Below are positions 5-45,560 of a stretch of 46,005 nucleotides of DNA, piece after piece. Origin of the DNA: Octopus bimaculoides (taxonomy: Eukaryota). The position numbers and the translations under genes were made by a program. The stretch is from positions 100,485,905 through 100,531,909 of the forward strand of contig NC_068983.1 in NCBI RefSeq assembly GCF_001194135.2. Direction: 5' to 3'. Each line of letters begins with the position of its first letter. The first letter of the stretch is position 1. Under the pieces are notes generated by a model. The model saw only the letters and a program-made list of their open reading frames with translations, searched no databases and was not told the DNA's origin.

Positions 5-348
5 TGTAGTAACGCCGTGCGCATGCGTAGAATTAAACAACCAAGCGTTCCCGCTCAATTCATTCTCTTTCTCGCTGGCCAGCGATTGAGCATGGACGTA
101 TTTAAGCTGTCTCTCTACATCTTTCGGACTTACACTCGACAGCTCGCTCACAACTACAGAACAACGTCCCAACAACTATGCTCATACACACAGAAGCTGT
201 AACAACAAGAACTAAAGATGTATATATTTACCACCTAAATAAAGTGTTGTTTAAGTTGATAGTCTGGAGTTCAGCGTTCCGTTATATTCTAAGTTTATAG
301 TAGGAAAGTCAGGTATACATCTAAAGATGTATAACCAACTTTCCTATA
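5..348 (+). mobile_element. Solo LTR-like element, copy 1 (subfamily A)
   Basis: Begins TGTAGTAAC and ends TTCCTATA. Flanked by CATG at 1-4 and 349-352 (4-bp TSD). Internal AATAAA at about 238. Highly similar to 2922-3250 and 17720-18047. Confidence 0.75.
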
Positions 349-2751: not shown

Positions 2752-2924
2752 AAGTCGGCGAGTTGGCAGAATCGTTAGCACGCCAGGCAAAAATGGTTAG
2801 CGGCATTTCATCCGTCTGTACGTTTTGAGTTCAAATTCTTAAGAGGTCGATAAAATAAGTACCAGTTTAGTACTGGGTCGATATAATCGACTAAGCCCCT
2901 TCCCTGAAATTGATGGTCTTGTGC
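2752..2924 (+). mobile_element. SINE family 1 copy (3' end fused to LTR copy 2)
   Basis: Head GGCGAGTTGGCAGAATCGTTAGCACG, with part of the core deleted. Confidence 0.85.
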
Positions 2925-3250
2925 GTAGAATTAAACAACCAAGCGTTCCCGCTCAATTCATTCTCTTTCTTGCTGGCCAGCGATTGAGCATGGACGTGTT
3001 TTTGCTGTCTCTCACCATCTTTCGGACTTTTACACTCGACAGCTCGCTTACACCTACATAACAACGTCCCAACAACTATGCTCGCACAATCAGAAGCTGT
3101 AACAACAAGAGCTAAAGATGTATATATTTACCACCTAAATAAAGTGTTGTTTAAGTTGATAGTTTGGAGTTCAGCGTATCGTTATATTCTTTAATTTTTA
3201 TATACGAAAGTCAGGTATACATCTAATGATGTATAACCAACTTTCCTATA
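2922..3250 (+). mobile_element. Solo LTR-like element, copy 2 (5'-truncated, subfamily A)
   Basis: Collinear and highly similar to copy 1 from TGCGTAGAATTAAAC to CTTTCCTATA. The 5' end is fused to a SINE. Confidence 0.75.
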
Positions 3251-5046: not shown

Positions 5047-5065
5047 TAATATATATCTATATAAT

Positions 5066-5270
5066 AAGGCAGTGAGCTGGCAGAAGCCTTAGCATGCTGC
5101 GCAAAATGCTTAGCAATATTTCGTCCCTCTTTGCGTTCTGAGTTCAAATACTGCCGAGGTCGACTTTACCTTCCATCCTTTCGGGGTCGATAAAATAAGT
5201 ACCAATTGAGTACTGGGGGTCGATGCAATCGACTTACACCCTCACCCTTGTTCCAAAATCTGAAACCAAT
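5066..5270 (+). mobile_element. SINE family 1 copy
   Basis: Full head, core and GAAACCAAT tail. Confidence 0.85.
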
Positions 5271-5631
5271 ATATAAGTGTATACAGTACGTGTGTATATA
5301 TATCTGAAACTAATATATGTGTACACAGTATGTGTGTATACATATCTGCTCATCCTCAGCTTCTGTCACAACTCATTAATCACAATTGTGTAATTAGGTA
5401 ATTCCACTGGTTGCTATACCTACCATCCCCACTTCGCCTTACATCTTCCTTATGTATGTGCGTCTATGCTATTATTGTATACGTGACGTTCTGTCCACTT
5501 CTCAGGTTGCATTCTCTCTTCTTTTACCTCACTTGATCTGACCTTCATCAAATACCTCATATTTCAACTGACTTGAATCCTGTAACAAACTCCTTTATTC
5601 CTTTCACACTTCTTTTCTCCCACAACTTTAT

Positions 5632-5857
5632 ATCATTTATCTTTTACTTGTTTCAGTTATTAGACTGCGGCCATGCTGGGGCACCGTCTTCAAGAATTTT
5701 TAGTCAAATGAATCGACCCCCAGTACTCATTTTATTATTTTTTTTTTTTTGTTAAGCTTGGTACTTATCCTATCATTCTTTTGCCGAACCGCTAGGTTAC
5801 GGGAACGTAAACACACTAACACCTGTCGTTAAGCAGTGGTGGTGGACACACACACAC

Positions 5858-13964: not shown

Positions 13965-14339
13965 NNNNNNNNNNNNNNNNNNNNNNNNNNNNNNNNNNNN
14001 NNNNNNNNNNNNNNNNNNNNNNNNNNNNNNNNNNNNNNNNNNNNNNNNNNNNNNNNNNNNNNNNNNNNNNNNNNNNNNNNNNNNNNNNNNNNNNNNNNNN
14101 NNNNNNNNNNNNNNNNNNNNNNNNNNNNNNNNNNNNNNNNNNNNNNNNNNNNNNNNNNNNNNNNNNNNNNNNNNNNNNNNNNNNNNNNNNNNNNNNNNNN
14201 NNNNNNNNNNNNNNNNNNNNNNNNNNNNNNNNNNNNNNNNNNNNNATATATATATATATATATATATATAAACATTTGTCCGGCGCACTCACAATTTTCC
14301 CATCTCACCGCCAGATACGCAGTAAAGATAATCCTCTCC

Positions 14340-14440: not shown

Positions 14441-14745
14441 TTACGTGTATAAAATAGGCCAAAATATTTTCATTGAGCGTAAAGTACCCCACGAAAAAGA
14501 ATATGTTGGCAAATCATTTGTCATCAATTTTTCGTCTTCAGCGTCTAATGTAACCAGTAACAAAAATATTGTGATCGAATAACTGAGAATTCAGAGCTAT
14601 AACGTTTGACCCACAAGATGGAAATAGAGATAATGTCCGACCGAAACCATTAAGAGATAAACAAAGTAGTAATGATCATGTAAGTAGAAATCGTGTCCGT
14701 GTGTATAAAGATAAAAGAAGGCATCAAGAATCTCTTGTAATGATA

Positions 14746-14958
14746 CTGATTTCAAGTTTTGGCACAAGGCCAGAAATTTCAGAGGAGTGGGTAAGTCGAT
14801 TACATTGACCCAGTTCTCAACTGGTACTTATTTTATCAACCCCGAAAGGATGAAAGGCAAAGTCAACCTCTGCGGAATTTGAACTCAGAAAGTGAAGACG
14901 GACGGAATGCTTCCCAGCATTTCGTCCGGCATGCTAACGATTGTACCAGCTCGCCACC
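14746..14958 (-). mobile_element. SINE family 1 copy
   Basis: Reverse complement of the head, core and tail. Confidence 0.85.
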
Positions 14959-14976
14959 ATTGTGTAAGCACAGAAT

Positions 14977-15159
14977 ATTGGTTTCAAATTGTGGCACAAG
15001 GCTAAACATTTGGAGCGAGGGGGTAAGTCGACTACATCGATCCAATTAGTACTTATTTTATCGACACCGAAGCAGAACTTCAACCCGGAACGTGAAGACG
15101 GACGAAATACCACTAAGCATTCTACCCGGCGTGTTAACGATTCTGCCAGCTTGCCGCTT
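14977..15159 (-). mobile_element. SINE family 1 copy (tandem with the previous one)
   Basis: Reverse complement with the core partly deleted. Confidence 0.85.
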
Positions 15160-15311
15160 TATCTCTTTAATAATATTGATAAGAACATGTACCCTCACAA
15201 AACAGTAGTGCTGCCGTTAATAGTAGAATTAAAACCCGAAATCAATATAGCCTTGTAGTGAATCGCGGAAATATACAAGCTCGTAAAAATAAGTTGTAAC
15301 GAAAGAAATAA

Positions 15312-15476
15312 ATTCGTCTGTCTTTAGGTTCTGAGTTCAAATTCTACTGTGGCCGACTTTACCTTCCATCATTTCGGGGATGATAAAATAAGTACTAGTT
15401 GAGCAGTGGGATCGATGTAATCGACTTACTCCCTCTTCCTCGAAATTGGTCGCCTTGTACCAAAATTTGAAACCAA
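15312..15476 (+). mobile_element. SINE family 1, 5'-truncated
   Basis: TTCTGAGTTCAAATTC...CCATCATTTCGGGG...GAAACCAAT. Confidence 0.8.
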
Positions 15477-15574
15477 TATATAGAGATGAATGTATATGTG
15501 TGTACGCACCCCAGACATATATTTATAAATGTATAAATACATGTATTATATATGTATATTTATATGTGTGTACA

Positions 15575-16717: not shown

Positions 16718-17719
16718 TGCGTGTGTTCACAAACTGACAGCAAATGCAACCCTTGGATACAGATATAAACTTTGAAATATAAACATAATTCAAAGCGGTC
16801 GCTTTTCATTTATATAGTTCTACCTGATGATAGGTAAACAAGGAACTAAACTAACATTTTGAAATTAAATTTACTTTTAAAATCTATACAGAGAGTTTAG
16901 AAGTTAATTGGTTGATACCTAATATTGATACAACCTTCAGGTGTTAATACGGACAGTAAATGTTAATATTAAAATGTATGTAGTCAGATAATCATTTACT
17001 TAGAACGAATCCAGATTTTAGCTTTTGACATATATACCCGTAATGCAGAGAGTCACGTTTCAATCAATTATATTCTCTGAGTTAGCTACACTGCATTAGT
17101 TTGAATCAGTTCAAACATTATATAAACAAAGATTTTCAAAAAGTATTAAGGAAGTACATAAGATGAATAATATTTATTATTATCCAACTTTAAGCATCAA
17201 CTTATTGCAACTATCAAAGGCTTACCGAACGCAAATTACGACAGTATCCTTTAAAAAACCGAAGAAGATTTAGATACGTTGTACTGACTAGCTTATTTTT
17301 ACGAACTAATACCACAGAGGAAATATTTAATTTTCAGTTTTTTTTTTAATGGTCAGGTATTAAAAGCTAACACTTGGGAATCCTGCTAAAATATGCTAAA
17401 TCTATATTCACGTACGTATGCCAGCTGAAGATGCAACACTCCAAAACTTGGAATTGAGTGTATTGACTAAAACAAAGACTTTTAATGACACAGGACAGTT
17501 GTGGTGATGATGATTCTATTAGCAAAAGAACCACTGATAAGTAAGAAATCGGAAACGTTTAATGCATGTAACTGTAACAAATATAGGAAGATATCGCAAT
17601 TATCAAACCATTTTGTGCACTCGTGGATGTCTAATAGTTAGTATTAGTGCGTTATGCGCAAATATTATATCTTGTGATAATTGCATCGCATCCTGTTATT
17701 ACAATTGCTCTAAGACTTC

Positions 17720-18047
17720 TGTAGTAACGCCTGCGCATGCGTAGTTTTACGCATGCGTAGAATAAAACAAGCAAGCGTTTCCCGCTCAATTCATTCTCTT
17801 TCACGCTGGCCAGCGATTGAGCATGGACGTGTGTTTAAAAGCTGTCCCTACATCTTTCGGTCTTATACTCGACAGCTCGTTATTCTCACCTCTAAAGATG
17901 TATAACAAAAGATATGTATGTTTTACCAAGTAAATAAATGTTGTTTAAGTTGTTTAGTCTGGAGTTCAGCGTTCCGTCAATTTCTTTAATTTTATGGTGG
18001 AAAGTTAGGTATACAATCTAAAGATGTATAACCCTCTTTCCACTAAA
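17720..18047 (+). mobile_element. Solo LTR-like element, copy 3 (subfamily A)
   Basis: Starts TGTAGTAAC with the same body as copy 1. CTTC at 17716-17719 and 18048-18051 is a TSD. Confidence 0.75.
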
Positions 18048-18621
18048 CTTCTAACTTTGTGTTCGTTATGTATTGGTTCAAGGCATCTTTTAAAAAAATC
18101 TTTTGTAAATAATTTCAATATGCTGTATATATTTGTTCTTCACATCAGATTTATTATTGTTCGTATTTTGTCCTTTGTCCGAAAATGTTTCGCCACACAT
18201 CATGTGACCGCTTCACCGATTCTATTTTCCACGTGTGGTTTATCCTTTTAATACACAAAACTTGATTTGTCCTTTTAGACATGTAAATGGATCTATTATC
18301 TAAAATATTTTATTTTGGTAAGGTTTATGATCAATAAATACTTGCGAACCTTATCCCTAAATTATAATGGAATGATGGTTTGTACTTTCTTTTCAACAGG
18401 GAAGATCTTTTCCATACATTTTTTTACTACAGAGGTGTATCAGAGGAAATACTTTATGATATTGCTACTTACAATATGCGCGTGCACACCTGGATAGGGT
18501 CATGATTTATGAGCACTGTGTAATGAGCAGTGAAAGCATGATGCCATTAGCAATCAATACTTCAAAAGAAGAGAAAATGAAGAACAAGAAGAAATTAAAT
18601 GTAAAATCAAAAACATCTCAC

Positions 18622-18766
18622 AATTGAATGATATCCAGGTCGATCGTGACACCACTGACAATCTACTTCTAGTGGTTTGACAGTCCGTCGATATTCTATA
18701 GTCGCTTTCAAAGCTTTCTCGGCAACATCAATATCCCAGTCTCTTGCTTTGAGAAACCGGCAAAGA
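18622..18766 (-). CDS. Internal coding exon of the same CRAL-TRIO gene (CRAL_TRIO_N helical region)
   Basis: Acceptor ctctctttatccag|T CTT TGC CGG and donor TCA ATT|GTGAGA. 145 nt encode (x)LCRFLKARDWDIDVAEKALKATIEYRRTVKPLEVDCQWCHDRPGYHSI, containing the LxRFLxARxWDxxxA motif of CRAL_TRIO_N. Splicing gives the continuous reading ...GYHSI|RQVGFD... Confidence 0.9.
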
Positions 18767-19296
18767 CTGGATAAAGAGAGAAATGACAAAGAATTAGAAA
18801 TGGCAAAATAGCAATGCATTACGAAAATCTCAATCCTAATGATTGAAATATATAAAAGAAAACAAAAAATAGCTTCCACCGTTGTTAAATGTCAAGTAAA
18901 TTTATCACTTTGGCCATAAAATATGTTCGCCTCTTCCATGCTCTTCACGTTAAGAACTTACTATGGAATATGTACTCTACTACATATACATAGATACAAG
19001 GAGACGCAGAGTTTCGCATGACCACATAGCGATATACAGAGTCACATCTAAAGACAAACATAATTATATCTATTAAAAAGAATTTGACAAATGTATAAAT
19101 CAACTGAGAAATTTAAACATTAAAACACAAAACAGAAACGGAAATAAAAATTCCTGTCGTGAATTTATGGTTATTATTCTGAGGTCATGCATCACATTTT
19201 TTAAAAATCAATAGGATATATCTTCATAAGGTCTATATATTATATGCTGTTGCGAATTGCAAGTAATACATTTCTCCTTTTAATGTTAACTATGGT

Positions 19297-19515
19297 TAGG
19301 ACGGCGAGCTGGCAAAAACGTTAGCACACCGGGCAAAATGTTTAGCAGTATTTCGTCTGTCTTTACGTTACGAGTTCAAATTCCGGCGAGGTCGACTTTG
19401 CCCTTCATCCTTTCGGGGTCGATAGATTAAGTACCAGCTGCGTATTGGAGTAGATCTAATCGGCTGGCCCCCACTCCCCAAAAATTTCGGGCCTTGTGCC
19501 TAGAGTAGAAAAGAA
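19297..19515 (+). mobile_element. SINE family 1 copy
   Basis: Full head and core. Confidence 0.85.
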
Positions 19516-19749
19516 TCGTTAGAGCAACGGACAAAAATGCGTTCGCTAATCATTTGATAAGTTGTTTAAAATATCCTGGGTAATAATGAATATTCCTAAT
19601 CTTATGTATCGCCTGAATATTTTTTTGAAAATCTTTGTTTATATAATGCTCGAGTTGACTCAAATTAATGTAACGTAGCTAACTCAGAGAATATAATTAG
19701 GTGGATTGAAAAATAACTCTGCATTAAGGGGATATTTGTTAAAAACTAC

Positions 19750-21046: not shown

Positions 21047-21310
21047 GTATGTATGTGTCTGTTGTTGGTTGTTGGCACTCCGTCGCTTACGACGTCGAGG
21101 GCTCCAGTTGATCCGATATATATATATATATATATATANNNNNNNNNNNNNNNNNNNNNNNNNNNNNNNNNNNNNNNNNNNNNNNATATATATGTATGTA
21201 TGTATGTATGTATTTATATATAAAGTCTACTCAACACATGGATTTGAACGGAGATATAATGTGTATGTATGTATGTATATATATATGTGTGTGTGTGTGT
21301 GTGTTTGTGC

Positions 21311-21348
<38 letters not shown>

Positions 21349-21367
21349 GTGCGTGTGTGTGTGTGTG

Positions 21368-22220
21368 CGTGGTCTGATCAATAAGTATCCAGACTGTTGA
21401 CATAGTAACGAAGCTAAAGCAAGCAGAGTGAAGCCGCACGACACAGATTGATCTTCAACTCTGCTGTGCATGCGCACAAAGTCTTAACGTTCTATTTCAC
21501 TTCCACTGTTTACAGCAGTTCTTGTAGCGGGTGATCGTCACATTAACCATAACAGAGAAAGTTGAGCAGAGAACCTGCAACAAATTTTGCCGAAAGCTTG
21601 TCGATACCTGCTCAGGGGCCTACGCAAAGGTTTCAAAAAGTTTTCTTCGTTCTTAACACAATCAAGTAGATCTTGTGCAACTGAAGCACGTTTGTCATTT
21701 TGGTCAGCTGAAAGCAGTTTTGGTACAAACTTGGCAGACACGCGTCTCACACCCAAATCTTCATTGCTAATGGACTGAACTGAACTGTAACTAATTCGCA
21801 CAACTCTGATAACGCAGAGATGGTGATTCGACGATTTCATCTCACAGCTGCAATGTTTTTCTCAGTTCTGCTGGTTGCGGGTCTGCCAGAATGTTCGTCA
21901 ATATCGACATTTTATGAGCCATCTTCGAAACGTCTGAACCACTCATACACTTGTGTGTGGCTCATACACTTTCTGCAAATTTGCACATACCTCTGCGCAG
22001 GTATCACCATGGCAACTTTCTCTGTGATGGTCAATGCGACGAACACACGCTACACACGTTCCTTCAAAGCACTGCTGTAAACAGCCGAAGTGAGCTAGAA
22101 CGTTAAAATTTAGTGCACATGCACAGCAGAGTCCAAGGTCAATCTGTACCAAGCGGCTTCACTGCATGCTTTAGCCTCAGTACTATGGCAACAGTCCGGA
22201 TACTTATTGATCAGAACTCG
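21368..22220. mobile_element. Non-autonomous mariner derivative built from two inverted 5' ends
   Basis: TIRs GGTCTGATCAATAAGTATCCAGACTG and CAGTCCGGATACTTATTGATCAGAACTCG|TA. The + strand gives the transposase N-terminus (TEKVEQRTCNKFC). The - strand gives the N-terminus through YEWFRRFEDG, SGRPATS and RRVSAKFVPKLL to EENFLK. Confidence 0.85.
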
Positions 22221-22316
22221 TATACTAGTAGAAACATCTGTCACTGACTGGGTTGAAAAAGCTGCCAAAAGTGTATTAGGAATATTGAAAGTTATTCACT
22301 TAGATTGTATTGAACA

Positions 22317-22688
22317 TGTAGTGACGTCATTTGGCGCCAAGGTACGGTCGCCATTGCTGCGTTTTTATCCACGCATGCGTGGAGTTCAACATCTAAGCGT
22401 TCCCGCTTTTTTCATTCTCTTTTCTCGCCAGCCTGCGAAGAGGTAACATAGGTCCTACAGAGCTCTCTCATTGAGCGTGGTCGTACCAGGCTGTCTCTCC
22501 AACAATCCAACTCTGGGGACGGCTCACAGCAACATTCCGGCGTCTCAGCAACCAATTTAAGGCTGCCTATTTCATCCATAAATAAATATTGTTGTGTTGA
22601 TAGTTCAGAGTTCTGCGTTTCGTTGTTATTCCGAATTTAATATAGGAAAGCAGGTATACACCTAATGGTGTATAACCGCTTTCCTAAA
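22317..22688 (+). mobile_element. Solo LTR-like element, copy 4 (subfamily B)
   Basis: Starts TGTAGTGAC. Shares AAGCGTTCCCGC, the CATTCTCTTT block, AATAAA and the terminal hairpin. AACA TSD at 22313-22316 and 22689-22692. Confidence 0.7.
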
Positions 22689-25132
22689 AACATATATAGA
22701 AGAAATAGCTGTTAACTTTCGTGTAGATGATAGAGCTGTATCCTTCTGGCCAACATATAAGAAATGACTGTCAATTTTTATGTAGACTATAGAGCTGTTT
22801 CCTTCCGACCAATGGCACCATGGGTACATATAAACTTCTGATCTATGATCTCTATTTCAGTCTATAAATGAAGCAAACATTGCACAGAGTTTCGCTTATG
22901 AGTAGTACAAGGTAACTAAATAAAAGTTAGGGGAAAACTAAAAACATATGTACCATAATTTATTGAACTTAAGTATTACAAACAAAAATACAAACAGCTT
23001 TTCTTAGGCAAATAGCCAGGTGGCTCGAAGATATAAATATGAAACGAATAAAAACACTATAATAATGCTATCAAAGTGCATACACAAATTTATTAGGTAT
23101 ATATAGTAACAATCTATCTCTGTAAGATTAAACATCGTAAAACGTGAATAATTTTCCTATTTTAGTTTTCCCAGAACTTTCATTTAGTTTTGTTGTACTT
23201 GAGGAGAGTCATTCTGTTCTGATGCCTTATTAACTCTCATCGGTTCGATTTCCACTCATTTATTTACAGTTTTCTACAATTTTCGTTGCTTCTTGCAGCA
23301 TCTTCAATAGTTCTTGACTATGTCCGTTATCGGAGCTGCGTTACGTTTTTTGTTCGTTTGTTTGTTTGTGTACATGTGTGCGTCAGCGGACATGTGTATA
23401 CACGTATGCATGTATGTGTGTGTGTGTGTATTCTGCATATTCATTTGTTTCTGTGTGCATGTTTGTGTATTTGTATGTGTTATCTCCCTTTAGACCGGGC
23501 AGTTATTTTCAGTGAGAACTGCGCTATGGGCAACGTTTTGGAAAAGGGCCTGTAGCTCCCTTAGGGGTACCTAGAGACTCGGGACTACTTCCATTGTCTT
23601 CCTCAGAAAATTTTACATAAGAATTAACTTTTAATTTTTATGTAGATGTTATAAGCCTTTCTTCCTATAAATCGACAGACAGAGACATACTCATAGGCGT
23701 TCATCTTTATCATATATAATAAATTAGATGAATATATGCGCGCGCGTAGTATATTTTGTGTTGGTTATCTCCTCAGATTCTTAGAATTTCGACTGGATCA
23801 CTTCATTGTTTTTGCAATGATTTTTACTTATTGTTCTAGTTATTAAATCAATAATTCACTCTCTCAATAATACACCAAAGATCTACAGGTAAGTATAGCT
23901 GAAATCATGAATTAGTAATACGCCGCTAACACTGAAAATTGTTATAATAGTACACAAATATTTTGTTTTCTTTTTGTTTTGTTTTTTGCTTGATCATATA
24001 CTTTATATAGTTGTTTGGTCATAAAGATATTGCCACGTTAGTGTAGATTCAATTTTACCATTTATCTTTATTTTGAGAAAAATTATAGATCTTTCGCTCG
24101 GATTCTTTATATTACCATTAAGATTTTTTTTATTGATTTTTTTTTTCGTTTTTGCAGTAAAGTTTTCGTAAGCATATTGTAAAGGTTCACTAAAGGACTG
24201 TACAAGTTCAGTGATTTTACGTCATAGAAATTGCTCAGGGACATATTTCTGAAAAATTCTATAACGAAATTCTGTTCACAATATCCTTGTTTAAACTGAT
24301 ATCAAGTGTCTAATAGAATCGAAATACGATACAACTGTAAATATATCTGAAACAATAAATAGATAATCAAGAACAATTAATACACACGATAGCTCTTCTT
24401 TCCCCAGGTGCATGTTAACCAATAAACTAACAATGTTTCATAATAGCAAAACATTAGGAATATGCAGTTACATAAAAAAACTAAATCGTATTCGATTTTT
24501 GTTTGCTACTGAAAATTTAAAACTATTACTTTCCAGACTATGAGTAACTGATCTGTTCTTATGGATCTTGTATGACAGGAAAGCTTGAATTAAAAACAGA
24601 GAATATGAAGGTGTTGACCACAATGTTTAAAATAGAGGTTATAATCTAACATGATTATCAAACTGCTGAAAAACTAAATATATTTGTAAAGTTTGGCAAT
24701 TTAGAAGCAAGGTCTTCTTACTTAGACACAAGGCCTGAGATTTATAGTCAAGTCGATATGAGATTAAATAATGTTCATACAGTTTGCCAGAAATATAACA
24801 ATACACCAAAGGTAAAATGATTACAATTTGAAGTAGAAAGTAGGTTACAAAATCAGCTTATTATTAATGGTTGCTTTTAGAAGGCACTAATAAATAGCAA
24901 GAAGAGCCTAATTTTTTAAATATGTGACCTACACTCAGGTTTATGCTTTCAAAAGACATTACACGTATATAAAGAAATAATAGCTGGTTATTATTGATAA
25001 TGTAAAATAATGAGCGGCTTTCTGATATAACGTAGAGCAACGTTACTGAACACAGTTGGAAAAAGTATGGATGTCCGAACTACTTGTTTCTCCACGACAC
25101 TGTTAATTTTTATTTTTATTCACGTAATTCAG

Positions 25133-25350
25133 TGTAGGCGGCAAGTTAGCAGAAATGTTAGGAGCGTCCAACAAAATACTATGCAATATTTGCTTCAACT
25201 TCAAATTTAGCCGAGATCTACTTTGCCTTTGGTCCTTTCGCAGTCGATAAAATAAGTACCAGCTGAGCACTGGGGTCGATGTAATCGACTTAACCCCTCC
25301 CACTAAATTGCTGGCCTTGATCCTAAATTTGAAGCCAATTTGAAACCAAT
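25133..25350 (+). mobile_element. SINE family 1 copy
   Basis: Diverged head, core and tail. Confidence 0.8.
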
Positions 25351-26648
25351 ACGTGTTCTGGCTCTTTACTGTCAGAAGTTAGATCCGACGACGTCATCTT
25401 TCATGCTTCCGAGTTGGCTAAAATAGAATAGCAGGCCACGTCAGTAGACTGGTGAATAGACTGGTTGGATAAATGTTTTACAATATGTACTCCAGCTCTT
25501 TACGTTCTGAGGAACAAGGTAGTGTGTCCAATTTGTCAATATTTAACCGACAAGGTGGAGTCTTTAAAAATATACCCAAAGAGACGGGAACCACCATTGG
25601 TATGCTCCCTCGAAAATATCATGACAAGTTCAGATCTCTTGTCAAGATCAAGGACTTTCGTACAGAGAAAGAATTCAGTGTGAGCATATTTGAAAGATTT
25701 GCTCTCGATTTAATCACACCGTTTACAGGAAAATCTTTGAAAATATTAGTTCGAGTATTTGATTTCACAAATGGTAGGGTGTTCATTTAAAACTTTAGTT
25801 TCAAATTCATCAGTGCTGACTAGACTTTACATGCGTGTGCGCGCGTGCGTGTACATTTAACATATACTTTTAAATACCCTCTTAGTATATATTCTTTTAT
25901 ATACAAACTTTAAATTCAGAATGACAGCTAGCCAAGTCGATTGTAGTGAGCAAACTATTTGATGTGTCAGTGCAATCACTATTACCACATAGCCCATATC
26001 TACTGGCTCAGTAAGGGAAAATATCGCATGCCATGTTAGTTTACTGTTCTCCAATTGGCTAAGACTATCATGGAATAATTCACATAACGGTTCTGTTTTA
26101 GCTAATTCTACTCACTTTACGTTAAAGTCGGTTCAAAGAATATTGGACATAAGCCATGCAAATACTCATCAACAGTTCAGATGTAAGACAAGCAAATAAA
26201 AGATGCTGTTGCCTCGAAATCTGGTTTTTATAAAACGACTTTTTACTCTTTACACTGAGAAAGAAAAAGTAGCAGAAAAGAAGAGCAGTCTTAAAAGAAA
26301 AAAAAAACTATCAAGAAAAGAAATGAATTTTGGATAGTGTATATGTTATGGCAAATATTTATAGAAATTAGATGTAGAAACAAAAAATGAAATTAATAAT
26401 AATAACAACAATAATAATCTCAATACTAATGACAAAAATACTTAAAACAAATATGGATCACAACAACCTTGTAAACATTCGCATTACAATGAAGAACAAT
26501 GATAATACACTCATATATAAACCAGTTGTGCTTAGAGAGAAAGTAATCTATTAGCGTTGGTGCGATACTGAAGACTAGGTCTTGAGATTTAAAAATCCTG
26601 CGATAATACTTCTTGATTATCTTGATTCAACTGCATGTAGACTATATT

Positions 26649-27933
26649 CGACGGTGGGCTGAAAAGTTCATTGGCTGATTATAAAGGAGCTATGCTAGAG
26701 CTGTGAAATATTGCAAGCATTAATTTCAACTCTTTATTAATAACTGTTTTGTTTCTTTTCCTGTAAACTAACATCTGACTGTTCAAAGAAGACTTCAAAA
26801 ATAACTAATAGCGATTTCTCTTGAAAAAGGACAAAATTTGGCATCGCGGTGTTATCAAGTACCTGTAGATAAAAGGTTTAGCCCGCACTCCCCCAGGACA
26901 TTCATGCTGACATGGTTGCTACATCAAGAGAGGACACTTCAACTTTATCAACACTACAAAAGTGAACAGCTGAATTTAAGAGGCGGAAGGAGAGTCTTGA
27001 AGATGACTCATTTTCTGGATGTCTTGCAACTGCCACCACCAAGGAAAACATTGTGCTCACCGCATGCTGATAGATGACAGGCGATTGACTATAAATCAAA
27101 TAGCCAATGCTGTTAGCATATTTCATGAGAGTGTTGAGAATATTTTGCACAGTAAATTTGGCATGACAAGGTTTCTGCTCGGTGGGTGCCACATCTTCTG
27201 ACACCTGATCAAACGCGCACCCGGCTGATCACATCACAGAAAAATCAGACATTGTTTGAGGCAGATTCAGATAGTTTTCTTGAACGTTTCCTAACCCAGA
27301 ATAAGTGTTGGGTCCATCACTTTGAGCCAGAGACAAAGAGACAATCTATGCCGTGGAAACACCCCTTCTCACCTGCTCCAAAGAAGGCCAAGGTCGTATC
27401 ATCTGCTGTGATGGTGAAGGCCTGTTTTGGAGGGATGCAAAAGGATTATCTTCAAAAGAGTCACCATCAATGGAGAATACTATGCCAATTTGCTGAGGCA
27501 GTTGCGAAAGGCTATCAGGACCAAATGCCCAGGAAAACTGAGCAAAAGGTGTCGTTTTATCAGAATAATGCTCCAATACATATGTCCTTGGTTTCAATGG
27601 TTGCTGTGTGTGACTGTGGCTTTGAACTGATTGATCGGCCTCCTTATTCTCTTGATTTGGCCCCATCTGACTATCAGCTGTTCCCCAACATGAAAAACCC
27701 CCCACTAAGATGGGAACCAGTATCGCAGTGATGACGACGTCATGTCTGCTGTTGATAACTTTTTTTGATAAACAGGATAAAAGCTTCATCAATGGATCCA
27801 AGCACTGCAACACCAATGGAAGAAGTGTGTGGACTGCAAGGCAGTGGTGGTGGGGGGCCGAAAAATAAACCTCATTTGGTCATATTCCATGAGAGTATCT
27901 TGGTCAGCCCATGAACTTTTCAGCTGGCCTTCG
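26649..27933 (+). mobile_element. Full-length (~1.29 kb) defective mariner (DD34D) transposon
   Basis: TIRs GCTGAAAAGTTCATTGGCTGA and TCAGCCCATGAACTTTTCAGC. Frameshifted transposase with WVHHFEPETKRQS, YYANLLRQLRKAIR, YQNNAPIH and PPYSLDLAPSDYQLF. Confidence 0.92.
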
Positions 27934-28775: not shown

Positions 28776-29453
28776 CTGTAACAATTATTGATTATTTATG
28801 AAATTATATAATTAAGAACCAATGAGTCATTACTACCCGAAAGGTATCTCTTTAACTGCAATAGTTAACATCAAAGGTTCAACATCCATGTTATTGATTT
28901 ACTAACCTAATCGATATTGTTTTTTTTCTTCTTCTTCTTCTATCCTCGCTTACTGAACTTCAGAGACATCTGGTGTGCAGCATCTCTGCATAACGTATGT
29001 AATATTAACTTATTTCGTTGTTTCCAGGAAACAACCAACCAATAAGCTCTATGATACATTAAAATGTGATACATTCTACGCAGTTTGTATCACATGATAG
29101 GATACATCATTCTGCGTAAATGATACATTCTACGCAGAATATATCAGCAGAATGACGAAGTTAATCTTAGTTCAATGATTTCTATTTTATGAATCAATGA
29201 AATTAAGGTACCCCTTTTACATTAGATTGGAGAATTCAGTATTCTTATTTGTTGTGAATAATGGATATCAAACACTATAGTTAGGATCTGATTTACTCGT
29301 CTTTTCGCCTAAGAAACAAATCTTAAAGGAATGGAAACCAATAAATAAAGTTTGAAAAACAAAATCTCCACATATATTACAGAAGATCTGAAAAACTGTT
29401 AAACAATTACTTGTTAATCTCATTAGAATATAGGCAAATGATAATAATAATAA

Positions 29454-29891
29454 TCCTTTCAACTATAGGCACAAGATCTAACATTAATGGGAGGGGACTA
29501 GTCGATCATATCGACCTTAGTGCTATACTAGTACTCTATTTCATTAACCCTCGAAAGGATGAAGAGCAAAGTCGGTATCGGCGGAATTTGAACTCAGAAC
29601 GTAGCGACGGACGAAATGCAGCTAAGCATTTCTCTCGGCGCGGTAACGCTTCTGCCAGCTCCCGCCCTAATAATAATAATCCTTTCTACTAAAGGCACAA
29701 GGCCTGAAATTTGTGGCGAGGGGGTAAGTCGATTTCATAGACCTCAGTGCTCAACTCGTACTTATTTTCTCGGCCCCAAAAGGATGAAGGGTAAAGTCGA
29801 CTCACGTAGAATTTGAACTCAGACGTGAAGAAAAGATGATATACCGATAAGCATTCCGTCCGGCGTGCTAATGATTCTGCCAGCTCCTGCC

Positions 29892-29893
<2 letters not shown>
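29454..29893 (-). mobile_element. Head-to-tail tandem of two SINE family 1 copies joined by (ATT)4
   Basis: Copies at about 29454-29668 and 29681-29893, each ending AAAGGATTATT on the minus strand. Confidence 0.85.
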
Positions 29894-29955
<62 letters not shown>

Positions 29956-29983: not shown

Positions 29984-30350
29984 ATTTACATTGGACAATA
30001 TGTCAGCATTATAAAATCAAAACCGCCGACAAATGGTATAAACACCATCCTGAAGCTGTGACTGAGGGAGAAAATGTATCGATTCTCTGGGACTTCCCCG
30101 TACATACTGACAAGGCTATAAAAGCTAATAAACCAGATATTATTATAAAAGATCAGACAAAGAAGACGTGTTTATTAATTGACATGAGTATTCCCTCTGA
30201 TCATAATATAGCGCCGAAAGAATTTGACAAGATCAGTAAATATAAAGACTTGCTAATAGAAATTGAAAAAATGTGGCACCTCAAGGCAACTACCATACCA
30301 GTGATTGTAGGATCTCTAGGAATGATAAAAAAGGGTACTGAAACCTATTT
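29984..30350 (+). mobile_element. 5'-truncated Dong/R4-type LINE (restriction-like endonuclease region), running into an assembly gap
   Basis: Uninterrupted frame LHWTICQHYKI...WYKH.PE...ILWDFPVHTDKAIKANKPDIIIKD...CLLIDMSIPSD...KISKYKDL...MW...IPVIVGSLG, with PD-(D/E)xK RLE motifs. (TAA)n lies on both sides. Confidence 0.9.
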
Positions 30351-30478
30351 NNNNNNNNNNNNNNNNNNNNNNNNNNNNNNNNNNNNNNNNNNNNNNNNNN
30401 NNNNNNNNNNNNNNNNNNNNNNNNNNNNNNNNNNNNNNNNNNNNNNNNNNNNNNNNNNNNNNNNNNNNNNNNNNNNNN

Positions 30479-30581: not shown

Positions 30582-30933
30582 ACAAGAGCACTCAGAGAGC
30601 GCAAACCTCCGCCAACGCAACACCAACGTCTTCCTAGCGATTAGTTAGAGATGATTTTTAAAATGAGAATATCTGAAATAAACTCGACTGCTCTCACAAA
30701 CGAGAATACTGAAAATGAACCCGACCACTCTCAAAAATTAAGTAAAAAAACAAGAAAAATAATCCAGAATCCTTGTCCGGTATCAGATCGATACCAAAAT
30801 CTAATCAGTTCGTGCCAGTCATGAGTTCAAACATCCCTGAAAGTTTCATCCGAATCCATCCAGCGGTTCTTGAGACAAACAAACAAACACGACTGAAAAC
30901 AATACATCTGCCTCCGCTAAGGCGGAGGTAATA
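30582..30933 (+). mobile_element. Helentron-type non-autonomous element (HINE/DINE-like)
   Basis: A 5' subterminal CCTCCGCC (30606-30613) is complementary to the 3' GGCGGAGG. The 3' hairpin is CCTCCGC-TAAG-GCGGAGG (30911-30928), preceded by (ACAA)n. There is no TSD. Confidence 0.6.
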
Positions 30934-31148
30934 AATGATTTCAAATTTTTGCCACAAAGGCAGCTTGGGGGAGGGGATTAAGTCGATTACGTCAACTCCA
31001 GTGCGTAATTGGTACTTATTTAATCGACTTCGAAAGGATGAAAGGCAAAGTCGACATCGGTGGAATTTGAACTCAGAACGTAGCGACAGGCAAAATACCG
31101 CTAAGCATTTTGCCTGGTGTGCTAACGATTCTGCCGGCTCATCGCCTT
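30934..31148 (-). mobile_element. SINE family 1 copy
   Basis: Full reverse-complement copy. Confidence 0.85.
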
Positions 31149-32108
31149 AATAATATAATTTGCACAAATGTACTTCAAATACATACGTCCTTTTCTTATT
31201 GTCATACATTTAATCTACACACACGACTGATAACACAATCCTCACTAACAATTATGTTGAGAAAGATACATAGTCCCATAAATATAGATATTACATTACA
31301 ATACGCATACTCCTTTTTATCACACACAAAAGCAAATCTACAGACTAATGTAGCTACAGTTATAGGACTCCATCACACTGCTACACTTATAAATCCCAAT
31401 TAGATATAATAGCTAAGTATAAAAAAATAACGACAGATAAATATTTATATGTCTCTCTCAACAGAGCCGTTTTGACGTTTATGTCTTTTCCTAAGACTTA
31501 GACGTTAGCAGTGTATGGAAGCCGAAATAGCTACAATAAGGTATTAATGCTGAATTGCAGTATTAGAATTTACCTTACTTCTTATTCTACTGCGCGAGAC
31601 ACATTAAAAACAATACATTAGTGTCGTAGATTAACTGGAATATTTGTGGTTGAAGATCGATGTATGCAAACAAAAGAAGATAAAAGATAATGATTTTAAT
31701 TTAAGTATGCTGACTGCTACATAGAAAAGATTCAGTTGTTTACTGCAGTGGAGCTATACATTAGCACAAAGATGCAATTGTGTGTGGGAGAGGATAAATT
31801 CAAACAACTTTTGCGTTAATAGATTTCTTTCACATAAAAAGTCACTGAGGACTCAAATTTATAAATATTTACCAGATAATTTCTATAGTCACCAACTGAC
31901 ACCATACGATGACAGAAGCTATTAATGTAGCTTTAAAATAGTTGATTGGATTCCACTTTTACGTAACTTGCCAGTGGGAAGCTGCACCTTGCTAAGGTAA
32001 TAGTCTGTTGGCCTACCAACAAATGGGGGGAGGGGACAACAGTTCACTTTTCCAACGCTATTTCTGTAGTTAAAATGATGTGATCATGCTAACCAGCTGC
32101 GTGCGTGC

Positions 32109-32142
<34 letters not shown>

Positions 32143-32677
32143 NNNNNNNNNNNNNNNNNNNNNNNNNNNNNNNNNNNNNNNNNNNNNNNNNNNNNNNNNN
32201 NNNNNNNNNNNNNNNNNNNNNNNNNNNNNNNNNNNNNNNNNNNNNNNNNNNNNNNNNNNNNNNNNNNNNNNNNNNNNNNNNNNNNNNNNNNNNNNNNNNN
32301 NNNNNNNNNNNNNNNNNNNNNNNNNNNNNNNNNNNNNNNNNNNNNNNNNNNNNNNNNNNNNNNNNNNNNNNNNNNNNNNNNNNNNNNNNNNNNNNNNNNN
32401 NNNNNNNNNNNNNNNNNNNNNNNNNNNNNNNNNNNNNNNNNNNNNNNNNNNNNNNNNNNNNNNNNNNNNNNNNNNNNNNNNNNNNNNNNNNNNNNNNNNN
32501 NNNNNNNNNNNNNNNNNNNNNNNNNNNNNNNNNNNNNNNNNNNNNNNNNNNNNNNNNNNNNNNNNNNNNNNNNNNNNNNNNNNNNNNNNNNNNTGTGTGT
32601 GTGTGTGTGTATTTATTTATTTATCTATTTAAAAGACAAGGTATAAATAATGGCCATTACAAATTACCTCATTGTAG

Positions 32678-33099
32678 TGTAGGAAAGTGGTTATACACCA
32701 TTAGGTGTACACCGCTTCCGTACATTAAATTTCTAGAAGAAACAACGGAACGCAGATTCTGAACAACATAACAATATTTATTTACAGTGGAATTCAGTTC
32801 ACGCTTGGAGGGAATTCGGTAGCTCGTCGCCCTCGGTTACTGAGACGCCTCCTGAATGATTTCCGTGGTTATTTGTGATGCTCTGGTGCTGACATGTGAG
32901 AGAGCTTTGTTGGACGTCTTGGCTCGACGGGGATCAGTCAACGAAGAGACTGAGAAAAGGCGCCAAAGCTCGGTGTCGAACTCTACGCATGCGCATGAGA
33001 CTCTTCCTGTATTCCTTCCGGAACTAGTCCCTGCGCATGCGTGGATAAAACTCCGGACATTGAACATATAACAGTCGCCTGCTATAAGGTGTCACTACA
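32678..33099 (-). mobile_element. Solo LTR-like element, copy 5 (subfamily B-like)
   Basis: On the minus strand it reads TGTAGTGAC...CTTTCCTACA (TG...CA). GTAG TSD at 32674-32677 and 33100-33103. Confidence 0.75.
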
Positions 33100-33204
33100 G
33101 TAGTAAATTTATCTTACAACTGATTCCAGCAGTCATTATTGGTTTATTATTGATTGATTTACTCAATCAGTTCATTGATCGGTTGAGAAAAATTGCTATA
33201 TAAA

Positions 33205-33235
<31 letters not shown>

Positions 33236-34387
33236 TGTATGTATGTATGCATGCATGCATGTATGTATGTATGTATGTATGTATGTAATACAGTTACACA
33301 ACTGGATAAAATTGGAGTATTGCTTTTTTTTCTTTATTTTTTTCTGTTTTTGTTTTCGTCTTGCTTTGAAATAATTGTATTTCCTGCTTTTAATTTGGTT
33401 AGTTTCTCGAATAGCTTATGGTCACTTAGTGTAAGTTTCGAGTGATTTCTGAGCTTCTTCAGTGGACACTAAAGTTGTTTGAGCTTGTTGTTTAATAAAT
33501 TGGGATCATTATGTATATTCTGTNNNNNNNNNNNNNNNNNNNNNNNNNNNNNNNNNNNNNNNNNNNNNNNNNNNNNNNNNNNNNNNNNNNNNNNNNNNNN
33601 NNNNNNNNNNNNNNNNNNNNNNNNNNNNNNNNNNNNNNNNNNNNNNNNNNNNNNNNNNNNNNNNNNNNNNNNNNNNNNNNNNNNNNNNNNNNNNNNNNNN
33701 NNNNNNNNNNNNNNNNNNNNNNNNNNNNNNNNNNNNNNNNNNNNNNNNNNNNNNNNNNNNNNNNNNNNNNNNNNNNNNNNNNNNNNNNNNNNNNNNNNNN
33801 NNNNNNNNNNNNNNNNNNNNNNNNNNNNNNNNNNNNNNNNNNNNNNNNNNNNNNNNNNNNNNNNNNNNNNNNNNNNNNNNNNNNNNNNNNNNNNNNNNNN
33901 NNNNNNNNNNNNNNNNNNNNNNNNNNNNNNNNNNNNNNNNNNNNNNNNNNNNNNNNNNNNNNNNNNNNNNNNNNNNNNNNNNNNNNNNNNNNNNNNNNNN
34001 NNNNNNNNNNNNNNNNNNNNNNNNNNNNNNNNNNNNNNNNNNNNNNNNNNNNNNNNNNNNNNNNNNNNNNNNNNNNNNNNNNNNNNNNNNNNNNNNNNNN
34101 NNNNNNNNNNNNNNNNNNNNNNNNNNNNNNNNNNNNNNNNNNNNNNNNNNNNNNNNNNNNNNNNNNNNNNNNNNNNNNNNNNNNNNNNNNNNNNNNNNNN
34201 NNNNNNNNNNNNNNNNNNNNNNNNNNNNNNNNNNNNNNNNNNNNNNNNNNNNNNNNNNNNNNNNNNNNNNNNNNNNNNNNNNNNNNNNNNNNNNNNNNNN
34301 NNNNNNNNNNNNNNNNNNNNNNNNNNNNNNNNNNNNNNNNNNNNNNNNNNNNNNNNNNNNNNNNNNNNNNNNNNNNNNNNNNNNNNN

Positions 34388-34477: not shown

Positions 34478-34480
<3 letters not shown>

Positions 34481-34602
34481 GCTGGCGAGCTGGCAGAATC
34501 GTTAGCATGCTGGGCAAAATGCTTTGCAACATTTTGTCCATCTTTACGTTCTGAGTTCAAATCCCACCGAGGTCGACTTTGCCTTTCAACCTTTCTGGGT
34601 CA
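34478..34602 (+). mobile_element. SINE family 1, 5' half
   Basis: GGCGAGCTGGCAGAATCGTTAGCATG to GCCTTTCAACCTTTC. Confidence 0.85.
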
Positions 34603-35943
34603 AATAACTGACAAGCAACTCTGTGGTATTTCAGCAAAATATTTGCTGTAGCCCATCTTTTATACCAAGACAAAACATTGAACATGATAACACTTCCAAT
34701 TATTATTATTTGCCTTAGCCAGCAAACTTTAAGGGATCTTGTAAGACAGTTTTGTTGAAAATACACGCTTTTAAGAGCATGTATCCTCTAACACAGAGAG
34801 TGAATTCTCCAATATACTGCACACATTATCCAACACACTGCATATGCACAATATCAGTCCGAAAGCATAGAATAGTCAATGGTTTGCAAATTACCAATTT
34901 CGTTCGAGTACATTTCATTTTCTTTTGAAATGTCAGTACTATCTGATCAAATAGCTACAGTTTGTGAATAATTATTATTACAAGATCTGACAGTCTTCAA
35001 TAATATGCAACTAATCTGGCCACCAAGGGTTTCATCAAAGACTTCTAAAACCTCGATAAAAATAGCGTAAAGACAACGAGATGTAGCCAGGTTTTAAAGT
35101 TAGCGGGAGCGAGCACATAAGAAAAAAGGAACCGCGGCACATACCAGACAATTAACTTATTTCTCTTATATTCCACGAAATATTTCATTAGTTATAATAC
35201 ACATAATTGTATTCTACATTCATTAATTTCATGTTTCAAGTAACAATGTCATAATGTATGAAACTTACAACTGACATGGAATAACTAAAGAGTTTTAAAA
35301 AATTGTTGATAAGGTGCCAATTCTGAAAAATGTGCTCGTGGTTGGGGCGGTCGCCTCTCTTGCTCTCCTATTAGCTACGCCACTGCAACAAACAATTCCT
35401 TTTATATTATGAAATTTACAATTTACAACAAAGTCAGTTACAAAAAAATTGTTTAGGGTTTCGAAAACAACCAGAACATCGATAAGAGTGCATGCAGACT
35501 GATATTTAAAATTGAAATCTCAAATATTTGACTGATGTTATTTTGAGCTAATTGCTCCATACTGATGATGGAAGCTACATGTTTCAATATACACGTCGTA
35601 AGCAACAGAATCACCTCTGTGACAAGAGAATGGTCGATAGTATAACTAAAATGATTCACTATATCTAGTGTCTGTCATTTCGTGGGCAGCTGTCCTTCAC
35701 TTGGCAGACCCAACTAAAGTGGTCTCCAATTGATAAACTGGATATTACCACAGGCACATTTTTTGTGGAATGAGCTATTCAAAAAATGCAACAATAATTC
35801 ATCAAAGAACATTTATATAACATATTACATGTAACTGAATATTCAATGCAACTTGTAGAGAAAGTCACTTTAACTGTCTTAGGTTCATAGTTTCTCCCAC
35901 TTATTCAGTTGTATAATACATTTTATATACTACATACGACTGA

Positions 35944-36492: not shown

Positions 36493-36886
36493 AATTTTAC
36501 AATAACTCTATTAACTTCTCAATTATGTAACTGGGAGTGTTATATAAGTGAACTGTAGGCTACAAGGAAAAAATTGTTTATACACTTATTCATATCCTAA
36601 AAAATATAAGAAAAGCTTCATTACACTTTTTTGTAAAGGTGGCAGAGATTATTAATTGAATAAACTTAAACATCTCGAGACTAGATGCCAGAAGTAGAAT
36701 CTCTGCTGTCATGTAAAAGTCCTAGATATGGTTGTTTGAACTTTTCAGTCCATTAACTACGACTTTTTGTTTTTTCCTCATCTCAGTGGCCTTCAAATAT
36801 ATCATATCTACATATCTATTAACACACACCCCACACACACTTACACACACATCCTCTTTCATATCTTTGTCTCTCAAATATATGTA

Positions 36887-37117
36887 CGAGGTCTGGTCAA
36901 TAAGTATCCAGACTGTAGCCATAGTAACGAAGCTAAAGCACGCAGAGTGAAGCCGCTTGACATAGAGTGACCCTGAACTCTGCTGTGAGCTAGAACGTTA
37001 AAACTTAGTGCGTATGCACAGCAGAGTTGCAGGTCAATCTTTGTCAAGCGGCTTCACTTTCCTTGCTTTAGCTTCGTTACTATAGGAACAGTCCGGATAT
37101 TTATTGATCAGACCAGG
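36887..37117. mobile_element. 231-bp mariner-derived MITE with TA TSD
   Basis: TA|CGAGGTCTGGTCAATAAGTATCC...GGATATTTATTGATCAGACCAGG|TA. It has the same arms as 21368-22220. Confidence 0.9.
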
Positions 37118-38039: not shown

Positions 38040-38227
38040 ATATCATTTACCTTTTACTTCTTTCAGTTATCGGACTGCGGCCATGCTGGGACACCGCCTT
38101 GAGGAGTTTTAGTCGAATGAATCAACCCCAGTACTTATTCTATTGATCTTTTTAGATAAGTTACGGGGACGTAAACAAACCAACACCTGTCTCCAAACGG
38201 TGGTAGGGAACTAAGACCCGCGCGTAG

Positions 38228-43140: not shown

Positions 43141-45519
43141 AAAAAATATCAACGTCAAAATCAGCGTGAGACCCATTATATCTTAATTCAAAACCTATCC
43201 ACAACAGTTTGAAATAACCTCGTTTTACATTTACCAGTTCGTGGTAAACGTTGGCCGTACAAAAATATTGATTTAAGTCTCAGTCGAATGTGAATTTTCG
43301 GTCTAATAATTATCTGAATTTTTTAAAGTGGTTATTGGATCGATATTTGAATGAAACGGGCAAATTAAAAATTTTGCTAATTAAAGCAAAATTCTCAAAC
43401 ACAGAACCTTTAATTGTAAATAGCGCCACCCCATTTAAGATGGAGTTTAAAATGTATCATTCTCTTAAACGCTGCCTATGAATATTTTTATATTTGTAAT
43501 TTATTATAAGAATGATATGCAGTAATTGTGTTTGATATTTCAATATCAGTATGTACTTAAAATTTATAATAAATTTTGTGATAAAATTAAGTACAAAAAT
43601 ATATCCAGTTTCACAATATATAAATTATTTTCAAGTGTTAACCAAAATACGACAATTTTCTGCTTCAATAAAGGAAATTTATACGACAGCGAATCATTTA
43701 GAGTTAAATTAATGCGACTAGCTTCCATCTGTTCACTGGAAATTGCTTTAAGTATTTCTCATTAACTCGACCAGCAACTGAAGCTATGTTATTAACGAGG
43801 GATTTTCTGGCGATTAATGCAACATTTGCAATTTAGATACTTTCTACAACAACGAAACATTGAAATACGATAAATATGTAAACTACTAAAAATTAGTGTA
43901 ACAGTGGTGTTAACTAGCTTATATAGAAACTGGTTCATATAGTACACCTCAGTCAGTTTTAGAGCGTATCATTTACCAAGTCAAAGTTGGACTGAACAAT
44001 AGTTCTAGTCTTGCTTTTGCATTCACTGTTCCTAGATTTTCCCAGAAGATAGTAAAGTGAGTTTCCGGGTTACAGGATTTATTATTTAAACGTCAACGTC
44101 TATGTAACATAAGATGTACATTCAACTTTGAGGAATGGCTTCTTGAAGAGTAAAACTGCACAGAATGCTAGAAATAGTACTTATCTAAATAGCACCACCC
44201 CATGAAATATGTCTTGTATGTGTTTATATATTGTGATACTGAATATCTTTTTACACTTAATTTTATAACACTTACTTAGTACAAATTTTAAGTACATACT
44301 AATGTTGAAATATCATCAGACACATATAGAGAGTATAGCATATACATACAGAAAGTACAGCATGTATATACACCCAATTTGTAAATACAATATGACGAAT
44401 AAAACTTATTTTGAAGAAGAAAATTCAGAAAGCCAATAGATAATCGATATTTGATCTTACATTTTGACATGAAATATATATTTATATGTTTTTGACAATA
44501 TATTGTCTTATTCCAGAAAAAATTGGGTTTATTAGTTTACTGAGTTTCTTGATAATGGAAACGTAGAAATAGTTTGTTTAATTGATATGATTAACGTTGT
44601 TTAACAGCTGATATATAATGCATTGCATTGACAGAGAATCATAATCTTGCGAAATACTGTAAAGTGTTTAATCGTTTACTTTACAGGTTTGTGTCACTCT
44701 ATCTGCTAGAAATATCAGACAAATTTCCCGCATATCACATCCAATGGTTTTTAAAGTCTGGCATATTAACTAAAGCCTTTATATATTTATATTTATATAT
44801 TTATATATTTGATCCTTTATATTGAACACTCAATATTTCATCTACATTCAATACTTTCTTTCATGGTGCCATCCATTTTTATTTTATTTTATTTTATATT
44901 ATATATTGTATATTATATTATATATTGTATATTCCATATTCTATACCCCACATTGGTTCTGCAGGAATATAAATAAAACATAAAAAACAGACAGTGTTGG
45001 AACTCTTTTAAACAAAATAATATATTCCTTTATACACAATCATACAAAAAACCCCACCTTTTTNNNNNNNNNNNNNNNNNNNNNNNNNNNNNNNNNNNNN
45101 NNNNNNNNNNNNNNNNNNNNNNNNNNNNNNNNNNNNNNNNNNNNNNNNNNNNNNNNNNNNNNNNNNNNNNNNNNNNNNNNNNNNNNNNNNNNNNNNNNNN
45201 NNNNNNNNNNNNNNNNNNNNNNNNNNNNNNNNNNNNNNNNNNNNNNNNNNNNNNNNNNNNNNNNNNNNNNNNNNNNNNNNNNNNNNNNNNNNNNNNNNNN
45301 NNNNNNNNNNNNNNNNNNNNNNNNNNNNNNNNNNNNNNNNNNNNNNNNNNNNNNNNNNNNNNNNNNNNNNNNNNNNNNNNNNNNNNNNNNNNNNNNNNNN
45401 NNNNNNNNNNNNNNNNNNNNNNNNNNNNNNNNNNNATTATGTATAATAAAACTTTAATTCTGTCAACATAACAAAAATGACCTCATACAACTATGACAAC
45501 AGAGAATTAAGTGACAAAG

Positions 45520-45557
<38 letters not shown>

Positions 45558-45560
<3 letters not shown>

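Follow-up and report, generated by a model that had tools for sequence, protein, structure and literature searches.

Five related repeats in a 46,005-nucleotide stretch of the Octopus bimaculoides genome (contig NC_068983.1; hereafter "the window") end in a long hairpin whose two arms change together from copy to copy. Based on a comparison of these copies, we lean towards the view that the hairpin is a U5 stem-loop, which would adjoin the primer-binding site (PBS), overlapping the end recognized by integrase, as in avian retroviruses and Tf1. The repeats themselves are probably solo long terminal repeats (LTRs) of one LTR-retrotransposon family of the Gypsy type. The copies are referred to as c1 to c5, and all coordinates are given in Table 1.

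The window has a G+C content of ~34%, is rich in microsatellites, and is interrupted by six runs of N. Microsatellites border several of these gaps, and c5 sits between two of them. The two exons of a CRAL-TRIO gene are separated by an intron of more than 17 kb, and c1, c2, and c3 are located inside this intron, in an orientation antisense to the gene. The window also contains a SINE family that is found on O. bimaculoides chromosome CM046608.1 with an identity of up to 89%, a second repeat family, and remnants of mariner/Tc1-like transposases and of LINE reverse transcriptases. One of the mariner/Tc1-like segments (36883-37058) resembles an internally deleted version of the element at 21364-22163, and the relatives of the LINE remnants, at 65-75% identity, are distributed across many marine invertebrates. 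Another O. bimaculoides locus of 20 kb (L001) carries two copies of the same SINE family and no copy of the LTR family.

Table 1. Coordinates of the features discussed in the text. Paired positions are numbered as in c1; z-scores refer to shuffled sequences.
Feature	Position	Strand	Remarks
Assembly gaps (N runs)	13965-14245, 21139-21185, 30351-30478, 32143-32593, 33524-34387, 45064-45435		
CRAL-TRIO (Sec14-like) gene, two exons	874-1095 and 18610-18891	-	99% identity to O. bimaculoides A0A0L8IGV2
Octopus SINE family, at least 10 copies	1681-1908, 2752-2929, 5065-5242, 14742-15485, 19297-19524, 25200-25339, 29443-29894, 30928-31149, 34478-34629		
Second repeat family	5630-5840, 38040-38204, 45549-45743		
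Mariner/Tc1-like transposase remnants	26647-27933 (+), 21541-21861 (-), 36883-37058		Relatives with PF01359
LINE reverse transcriptase C-terminal ORF remnants	1994-2389, 30058-30350	+	Relatives with PF00078
c1, probable complete solo LTR	5-348	+	TGTAG...CCTATA; duplication CATG at 1-4 and 349-352
c1, Inr-like TCATTC	60-65	+	
c1, AATAAA	238-243	+	
c1, GT-rich run	244-258	+	
c2, probable 5′-truncated LTR	2922-3250	+	First ~19 nt missing; SINE adjoins 5′ side
c3, probable complete solo LTR	17720-18047	+	Duplication CTTC at 17716-17719 and 18048-18051
c4, probable complete solo LTR	22317-22688	+	Diverged subfamily; duplication AACA at 22313-22316 and 22689-22692
c5, probable complete solo LTR	32678-33099	-	TGTAG...CTACA; duplication CTAC at 33100-33103 and 32674-32677
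c1 hairpin	299-348	+	-22.7 kcal/mol, z -6.26; loop TAAA
c1 outer helix	300-309 with 338-347	+	
c1 inner helix	312-321 with 326-336	+	A334 bulged
c2 hairpin	3201-3250	+	-17.5 kcal/mol, z -5.67; reaches last base; C:C mismatch equivalent to 303:344
c3 hairpin	17995-18045	+	-19.8 kcal/mol, z -4.31; outer helix GT...AC versus TA...TA, both arms changed
c4 hairpin	22643-22686	+	-27.0 kcal/mol, z -7.30; T-A to C-G at equivalents of 309:338 and 320:327
c5 hairpin	32678-32724	-	-22.1 kcal/mol, z -5.11; TGTA pairs with terminal TACA; two G:U, one C:C
Pair	300:347		G:T in c1 and c3; A-T in c2; G-C in c5
Pairs	301:346 and 302:345		T-A and A-T to G-C and T-A in c3
Pair	309:338		T-A to C-G in c4
Pair	320:327		T-A to C-G in c4 and c5
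Second occurrence of CTAAAGATGTATA	212-224 (c1), 3112-3124 (c2), 17892-17904 (c3)		

Whether searched with BLAST, with an nhmmer profile, or with a covariance model run unfiltered, the window gave exactly five copies of the repeat family, with lengths of 330-420 bp. The c1 and c2 copies are 92% identical, c3 is ~75% identical to c1 and c2, and c4 and c5 are further removed; judged by their sequences, the family comprises at least three subfamilies. Each of the four complete copies begins with TGTAG and is flanked by a perfect 4-bp target-site duplication. The duplications differ from copy to copy (CATG, CTTC, AACA, and CTAC), which points to independent insertions by an enzyme with a fixed 4-bp stagger. 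Only c5 terminates in the dinucleotide CA; TA is found at the 3′ end of c1 and c2, AA at that of c3 and c4, and canonical inverted ends (TGTAG...CTACA, 5 nt) are present in c5 alone. LTR ends other than CA are known.

Several motifs follow one another in the same order in each copy, namely GCATGCG, a motif resembling an initiator (TCATTC or TCAGTC), AATAAA, and a run rich in GT directly 3′ of AATAAA. The initiator-like motif (TCAKTY) is located ~55 nt from the start of c1 and deeper inside c4 and c5, whilst AATAAA lies ~105 nt ahead of the LTR end. The motif set of animal Metaviridae LTRs consists of short inverted repeats resembling TGTTRNR...YNYAACA, AATAAA with a downstream GT-rich stretch, and a TCAKTY initiator (PMC3601003), and it is the match of the copies' initiator, AATAAA, and GT-rich layout to this set that argues for the solo-LTR reading. 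All of the 275 full-length LTR elements recovered from O. bimaculoides with LTRharvest were Gypsy elements (PMC6238403). Solo LTRs of the Gypsy type had been proposed in an earlier note on this DNA, based upon a TG start, 4-bp duplications, and AATAAA. AATAAA is indeed present in all copies, and the duplications, the TG starts, and the Metaviridae-like motif set lend support to the proposal, in which the LTR identity is deduced from copies without an interior.

Within the window, we found no full-length element, PBS, PPT, or gag-pol of the LTR family. Scans of JGI metagenomes, GTDB genomes, and IMG/VR with exact patterns, taken either from the core of the hairpin or from the poly(A)-to-U5 block, gave zero matches, and no called ORFs matched a composite query made of all stop-free LTR translations. 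We considered c1 and c2 as the LTR pair of one 3.2-kb element and rejected this pairing, as a CATG duplication of its own flanks c1 at either end; the pairing also fails because nothing resembling a PBS follows c1, and a SINE, rather than a purine tract, precedes c2.

The five solo LTRs, from at least three subfamilies, are packed into 33 kb (5-33099) and make up ~4% of the window. LTR elements account for <1% of mollusc genomes (PMC6238403), and the density seen here could reflect either local clustering or an under-annotated family.

That only solo units are seen would also suit small non-autonomous DNA transposons, either Helitron-like or of the Ginger type, an identity that we regard as scarcely probable. 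Ginger1 elements generate 4-bp duplications, as found here, and their integrase is related to Gypsy integrase. In addition, TGTAG fits the TGTNR termini of Ginger1 (PMC3601003). However, Ginger elements possess long terminal inverted repeats, whereas in the octopus copies the inversion between the two ends covers 5 nt at most, and this in c5 alone, instead of the >10 bp that would mark a Ginger-type element, another TIR transposon, or a MITE. The likeness to Helitrons lies in a hairpin close to one end of a mobile element. Helitrons carry a short 3′ hairpin 10-12 nt inside the end, have TC...CTRR ends, insert between A and T, and make no target duplication. In contrast, the octopus copies have perfect 4-bp duplications, TGTAG starts, no TC...CTRR ends, no insertion site between A and T, and a hairpin that reaches the end itself. 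Moreover, promoter and poly(A) signal are laid out as in an LTR.

In all five copies, the 3′ end of the LTR can be folded into a hairpin of two helices spanning 46-50 nt, and the stem stops 0-2 nt short of the LTR end, as set by the target-site duplications. At its base lies an outer helix of 9-11 bp, which a small internal loop separates from an inner helix of 10 bp; the latter has one A bulged out and ends in an apical loop of 4 nt (TAAA or TAAT). None of the five copies lacks the bulged A334, and each has an internal loop, albeit of varying size, which argues for a specific structure and not a mere palindrome. The terminal 60 nt of each copy were folded and compared with 200 shuffles, none of which folded as well as the real hairpin for any copy. 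When up to three mismatches are allowed, the 22-nt core of the hairpin has three matches on the + strand of the window, as compared with 0.00 expected. The hairpin begins >50 nt (about 55 nt) downstream of AATAAA in each of the five copies, and would therefore fall in U5. The five copies with a terminal hairpin described in the earlier note were all located, at or very near the same coordinates.

RNAalifold, when given the final ~115 nt of the five copies as aligned with MAFFT, recovered the hairpin de novo, with four pairs changed on both sides. In a structural alignment of the same copies, 99 of the 104 cells (95%) are paired, 13 of the 21 pairs are invariant, and five are changed on both sides; this alignment was built with the structure in view, and it represents five sequences and ~4 independent events. 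The change at 320:327 is common to c4 and c5 and is therefore taken as one event, and the adjacent c3 changes at 301:346 and 302:345 may also be one event. Two further pairs are altered on one side, to G:T, in c5, and G:T pairs occur at 300:347, 305:342, and 315:332. When columns were shuffled, the observed number of paired cells was reached in 2 of 5000 trials, and the number of double-sided changes in 27 of 5000. When the partners were slid by 1-3 columns, only 30-47 cells paired. The covariation of the arms that had been claimed earlier is thus borne out in these five sequences, with both controls far lower. In c5, TGTA pairs with the terminal TACA. C303 lies opposite C344 in c2 and c5, an uncompensated mismatch.

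The hairpin is also the best conserved block between subfamilies, with an identity of 62-84%, as compared to 15-50% in the middle of the LTR and 14-69% in its U3-like start. Such conservation suggests that active lineages kept the hairpin. It is not accounted for by the idea that the pairing is maintained by mutation, through intrastrand template switching (in host replication or reverse transcription) that copies one arm from the other without any function, and we consider this idea quite improbable. Template switching has been reported both to generate hairpin stems and to mend them, and to yield compensatory multibase changes in a single step (PMC8794818), and the c3 changes, which affect two adjacent pairs in both arms of a copy that is 2 nt longer, are a possible single multibase event. 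The additional 2 nt in c3 follow the CC, and an alternative view of the c3 change is that of a matched insertion of 2 nt into each of the arms. Arm-to-arm templating may therefore have made some of the changes, including that in c3. However, the process should push the arms towards perfect complementarity, and yet the A334 bulge, the internal loop, and the C:C mismatches persist. It would explain the origin of variants, but not their retention. The bulged A334, conserved in five of five copies, speaks against arm templating as a full explanation.

The antisense strands of c1 to c5 fold with energies of -24.1, -23.0, -19.3, -28.4, and -21.6 kcal/mol, respectively, which are as good as, or better than, those of the sense strands. 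C:A mismatches on the sense strand are G:T pairs on the antisense strand, and vice versa. Since both strands fold equally well, energy gives no means of choosing among a sense RNA, a minus-strand DNA, and a plain palindrome in DNA. For the same reason, we dropped the G:U pairs as an argument for the sense strand, as the antisense strand gains G:T pairs of its own and folds as well. Equal folding of both strands is what a plain palindrome should exhibit, and it is conceivable, if rather unlikely, that the arms are mirrored half-sites for a dimeric protein, so that the paired changes track binding specificity and no hairpin is formed. Candidates for the protein include a host factor and the integrase of the element, which would contact the end and, in addition, a subterminal site in inverted orientation. 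In keeping with this idea, the 3′ arm of the hairpin would be the terminus recognized by integrase, and not only the pairing but also the sequence of the block is strongly conserved, as seen from its invariant pairs. On the other hand, the bulged A334 and the unequal sides of the internal loop would break a two-fold symmetry, and the three G:T combinations pair but do not make mirrored half-sites. Furthermore, we know of no retroviral-type intasome that uses an inverted subterminal site.

The hairpin might also act as RNA, but in another capacity, such as 3′-end formation or termination in the 3′ LTR, packaging, dimerization, or as the precursor of a small RNA. We judge this unlikely. As it follows AATAAA and the GT-rich element by ~55 nt, its position is compatible with such a job, and so is its stem of ~20 bp with a 4-nt loop, which resembles short hairpin RNAs in overall form. 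Nevertheless, the loop is not self-complementary, as a kissing-loop would require for dimerization, and 46-50 nt is shorter than the usual animal pre-miRNA. There was no match to an miRNA or any other family in Rfam: the window gave no gathering-level match, and the copies gave just chance-level hits (E 0.4-2.8). The exact reach of the hairpin to the LTR end in all copies is, in addition, better explained by a connection of the hairpin with the PBS and the integrase-recognized end.

Several smaller features were observed in and around the hairpin. The sequence CTAAAGATGTATA, which is the 3′ arm of the inner helix in c1-c3, has a second occurrence ~108 nt upstream, ahead of AATAAA. This upstream occurrence, which is not found in c4 or c5, could pair with the 5′ arm of the hairpin as an alternative helix. 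The sequence AGCGTTCC occurs twice in c1, in the U3/R border region (44-51) and in U5 (273-280), and is also found at 2942, 17968, and 22396. The ~20 nt around the two c1 sites are alike, and may be a repeated factor-binding site. A second, weaker stem was placed by RNAalifold between AATAAA and the hairpin (233-288 in c1 and the equivalent positions), but it is probably not meaningful, being made mostly of G:U, with no double-sided changes and several broken cells. A TGG site complementary to tRNA in the 3′ arm of the hairpin was set aside, as it is present only in c4 and c5 and hence is not conserved.

According to the U5 stem-loop reading, the solo LTRs would have remained after an integrase-mediated insertion that was followed by loss of the interior. 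The LTR would have a short U3 (~55 nt in c1), an R of ~200 nt running from the TCAKTY initiator to ~20 nt beyond AATAAA, and a U5 of ~85 nt. The last 46-50 nt of U5 would form the two-helix stem-loop, whose 3′ arm would be the terminal ~22 nt of the LTR and, at the same time, the LTR end recognized by integrase. In the full-length transcript, the hairpin would be located directly upstream of the PBS and would hold the R-U5-PBS leader in shape for the placement of the primer and the start of minus-strand DNA. The terminal bases would thereby serve twice, in RNA pairing and as an integrase site in DNA. As the same bases would form the integrase site, changes at the end would have to be matched in the 5′ arm, giving rise to covariation, and such double duty would explain strong sequence conservation together with matched changes. 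In this scheme, we infer the U3/R/U5 borders, the adjacency to the PBS, the action at the level of RNA, and the role in reverse transcription. Several points speak against the U5 stem-loop reading: four of the five copies do not end in CA, the C:C mismatch is uncompensated in c2 and c5, the antisense strand folds as well as the sense strand or better, Rfam gave no matching family, the stem of ~20 bp exceeds known retroviral U5-IR stems in length, and the window yielded no full-length element, PBS, PPT, or gag-pol. The sample, moreover, comprises five copies and ~4 independent compensatory events. There is also a small chance that the hairpin acts at the DNA level, and not in the RNA leader, and that the paired changes are due to arm-to-arm templating during reverse transcription.

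If the hairpin is indeed a U5 stem-loop, then a structure of a few retroviruses and one yeast element has also been kept in a mollusc LTR family, in a form that is unusually long and that wholly overlaps the integrase-recognized end. It would offer a clean natural example of how two constraints, base pairing in the RNA and recognition of the DNA by a protein, bear on a single sequence, and the hairpin would be a useful annotation marker for this octopus LTR family.

The U5-IR stem-loop of avian sarcoma/leukosis virus is said to adjoin the PBS, in work attributed to Cobrinik et al. from 1988 and 1991 and to Miller et al. from 1997, and overlapping U5 elements of avian retroviruses are reportedly needed both for integration and for the initiation of reverse transcription. 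The octopus hairpin would resemble it in being a U5 inverted repeat that immediately precedes the PBS, but is longer (two helices, ~20 bp, 46-50 nt) and resides in a mollusc LTR element; the known retroviral U5-IR stems are shorter than ~20 bp. Self-primed Tf1 reportedly requires a U5-IR-like stem-loop for reverse transcription, a finding from 1998 ascribed to Lin and Levin. The likeness here is that a Gypsy-type retrotransposon, and not only retroviruses, needs a U5 stem-loop beside its PBS, whilst what sets Tf1 apart is a PBS that is complementary to the transcript's 5′ end and with which the stem-loop cooperates. The U5-IR precedent is also mentioned in PMC3601003. The earlier note had taken the octopus hairpin for an undescribed feature that could mark an unusual replication mechanism. 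This part of its argument finds no support, as a U5-IR stem-loop beside the PBS is established in avian retroviruses and required in Tf1; the U5-like stem, which it had also suggested, is in our analysis the best reading of the hairpin.

A hairpin has likewise been described in the fungal GalEa Copia elements, where the Conserved Hairpin Site is proposed to be essential for transposition (PMC5445492). As in the octopus copies, it is a conserved hairpin at an LTR boundary, that of the 5′ LTR, and it includes the last LTR base; one of its mismatches is strictly conserved, and its loop varies (PMC5445492). In contrast to the octopus hairpin, it is located just outside the LTR and replaces the PBS, and hence is missing from solo LTRs; its stem is 9 bp, and the elements are Copia, not Gypsy (PMC5445492). 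When placed beside these systems, the octopus hairpin is, on the present analysis, most likely a further example of a known device and not a new replication mechanism, and it is notable mainly because it is long (~20 bp, two helices), because it overlaps the LTR end completely, and because of the host in which it occurs.
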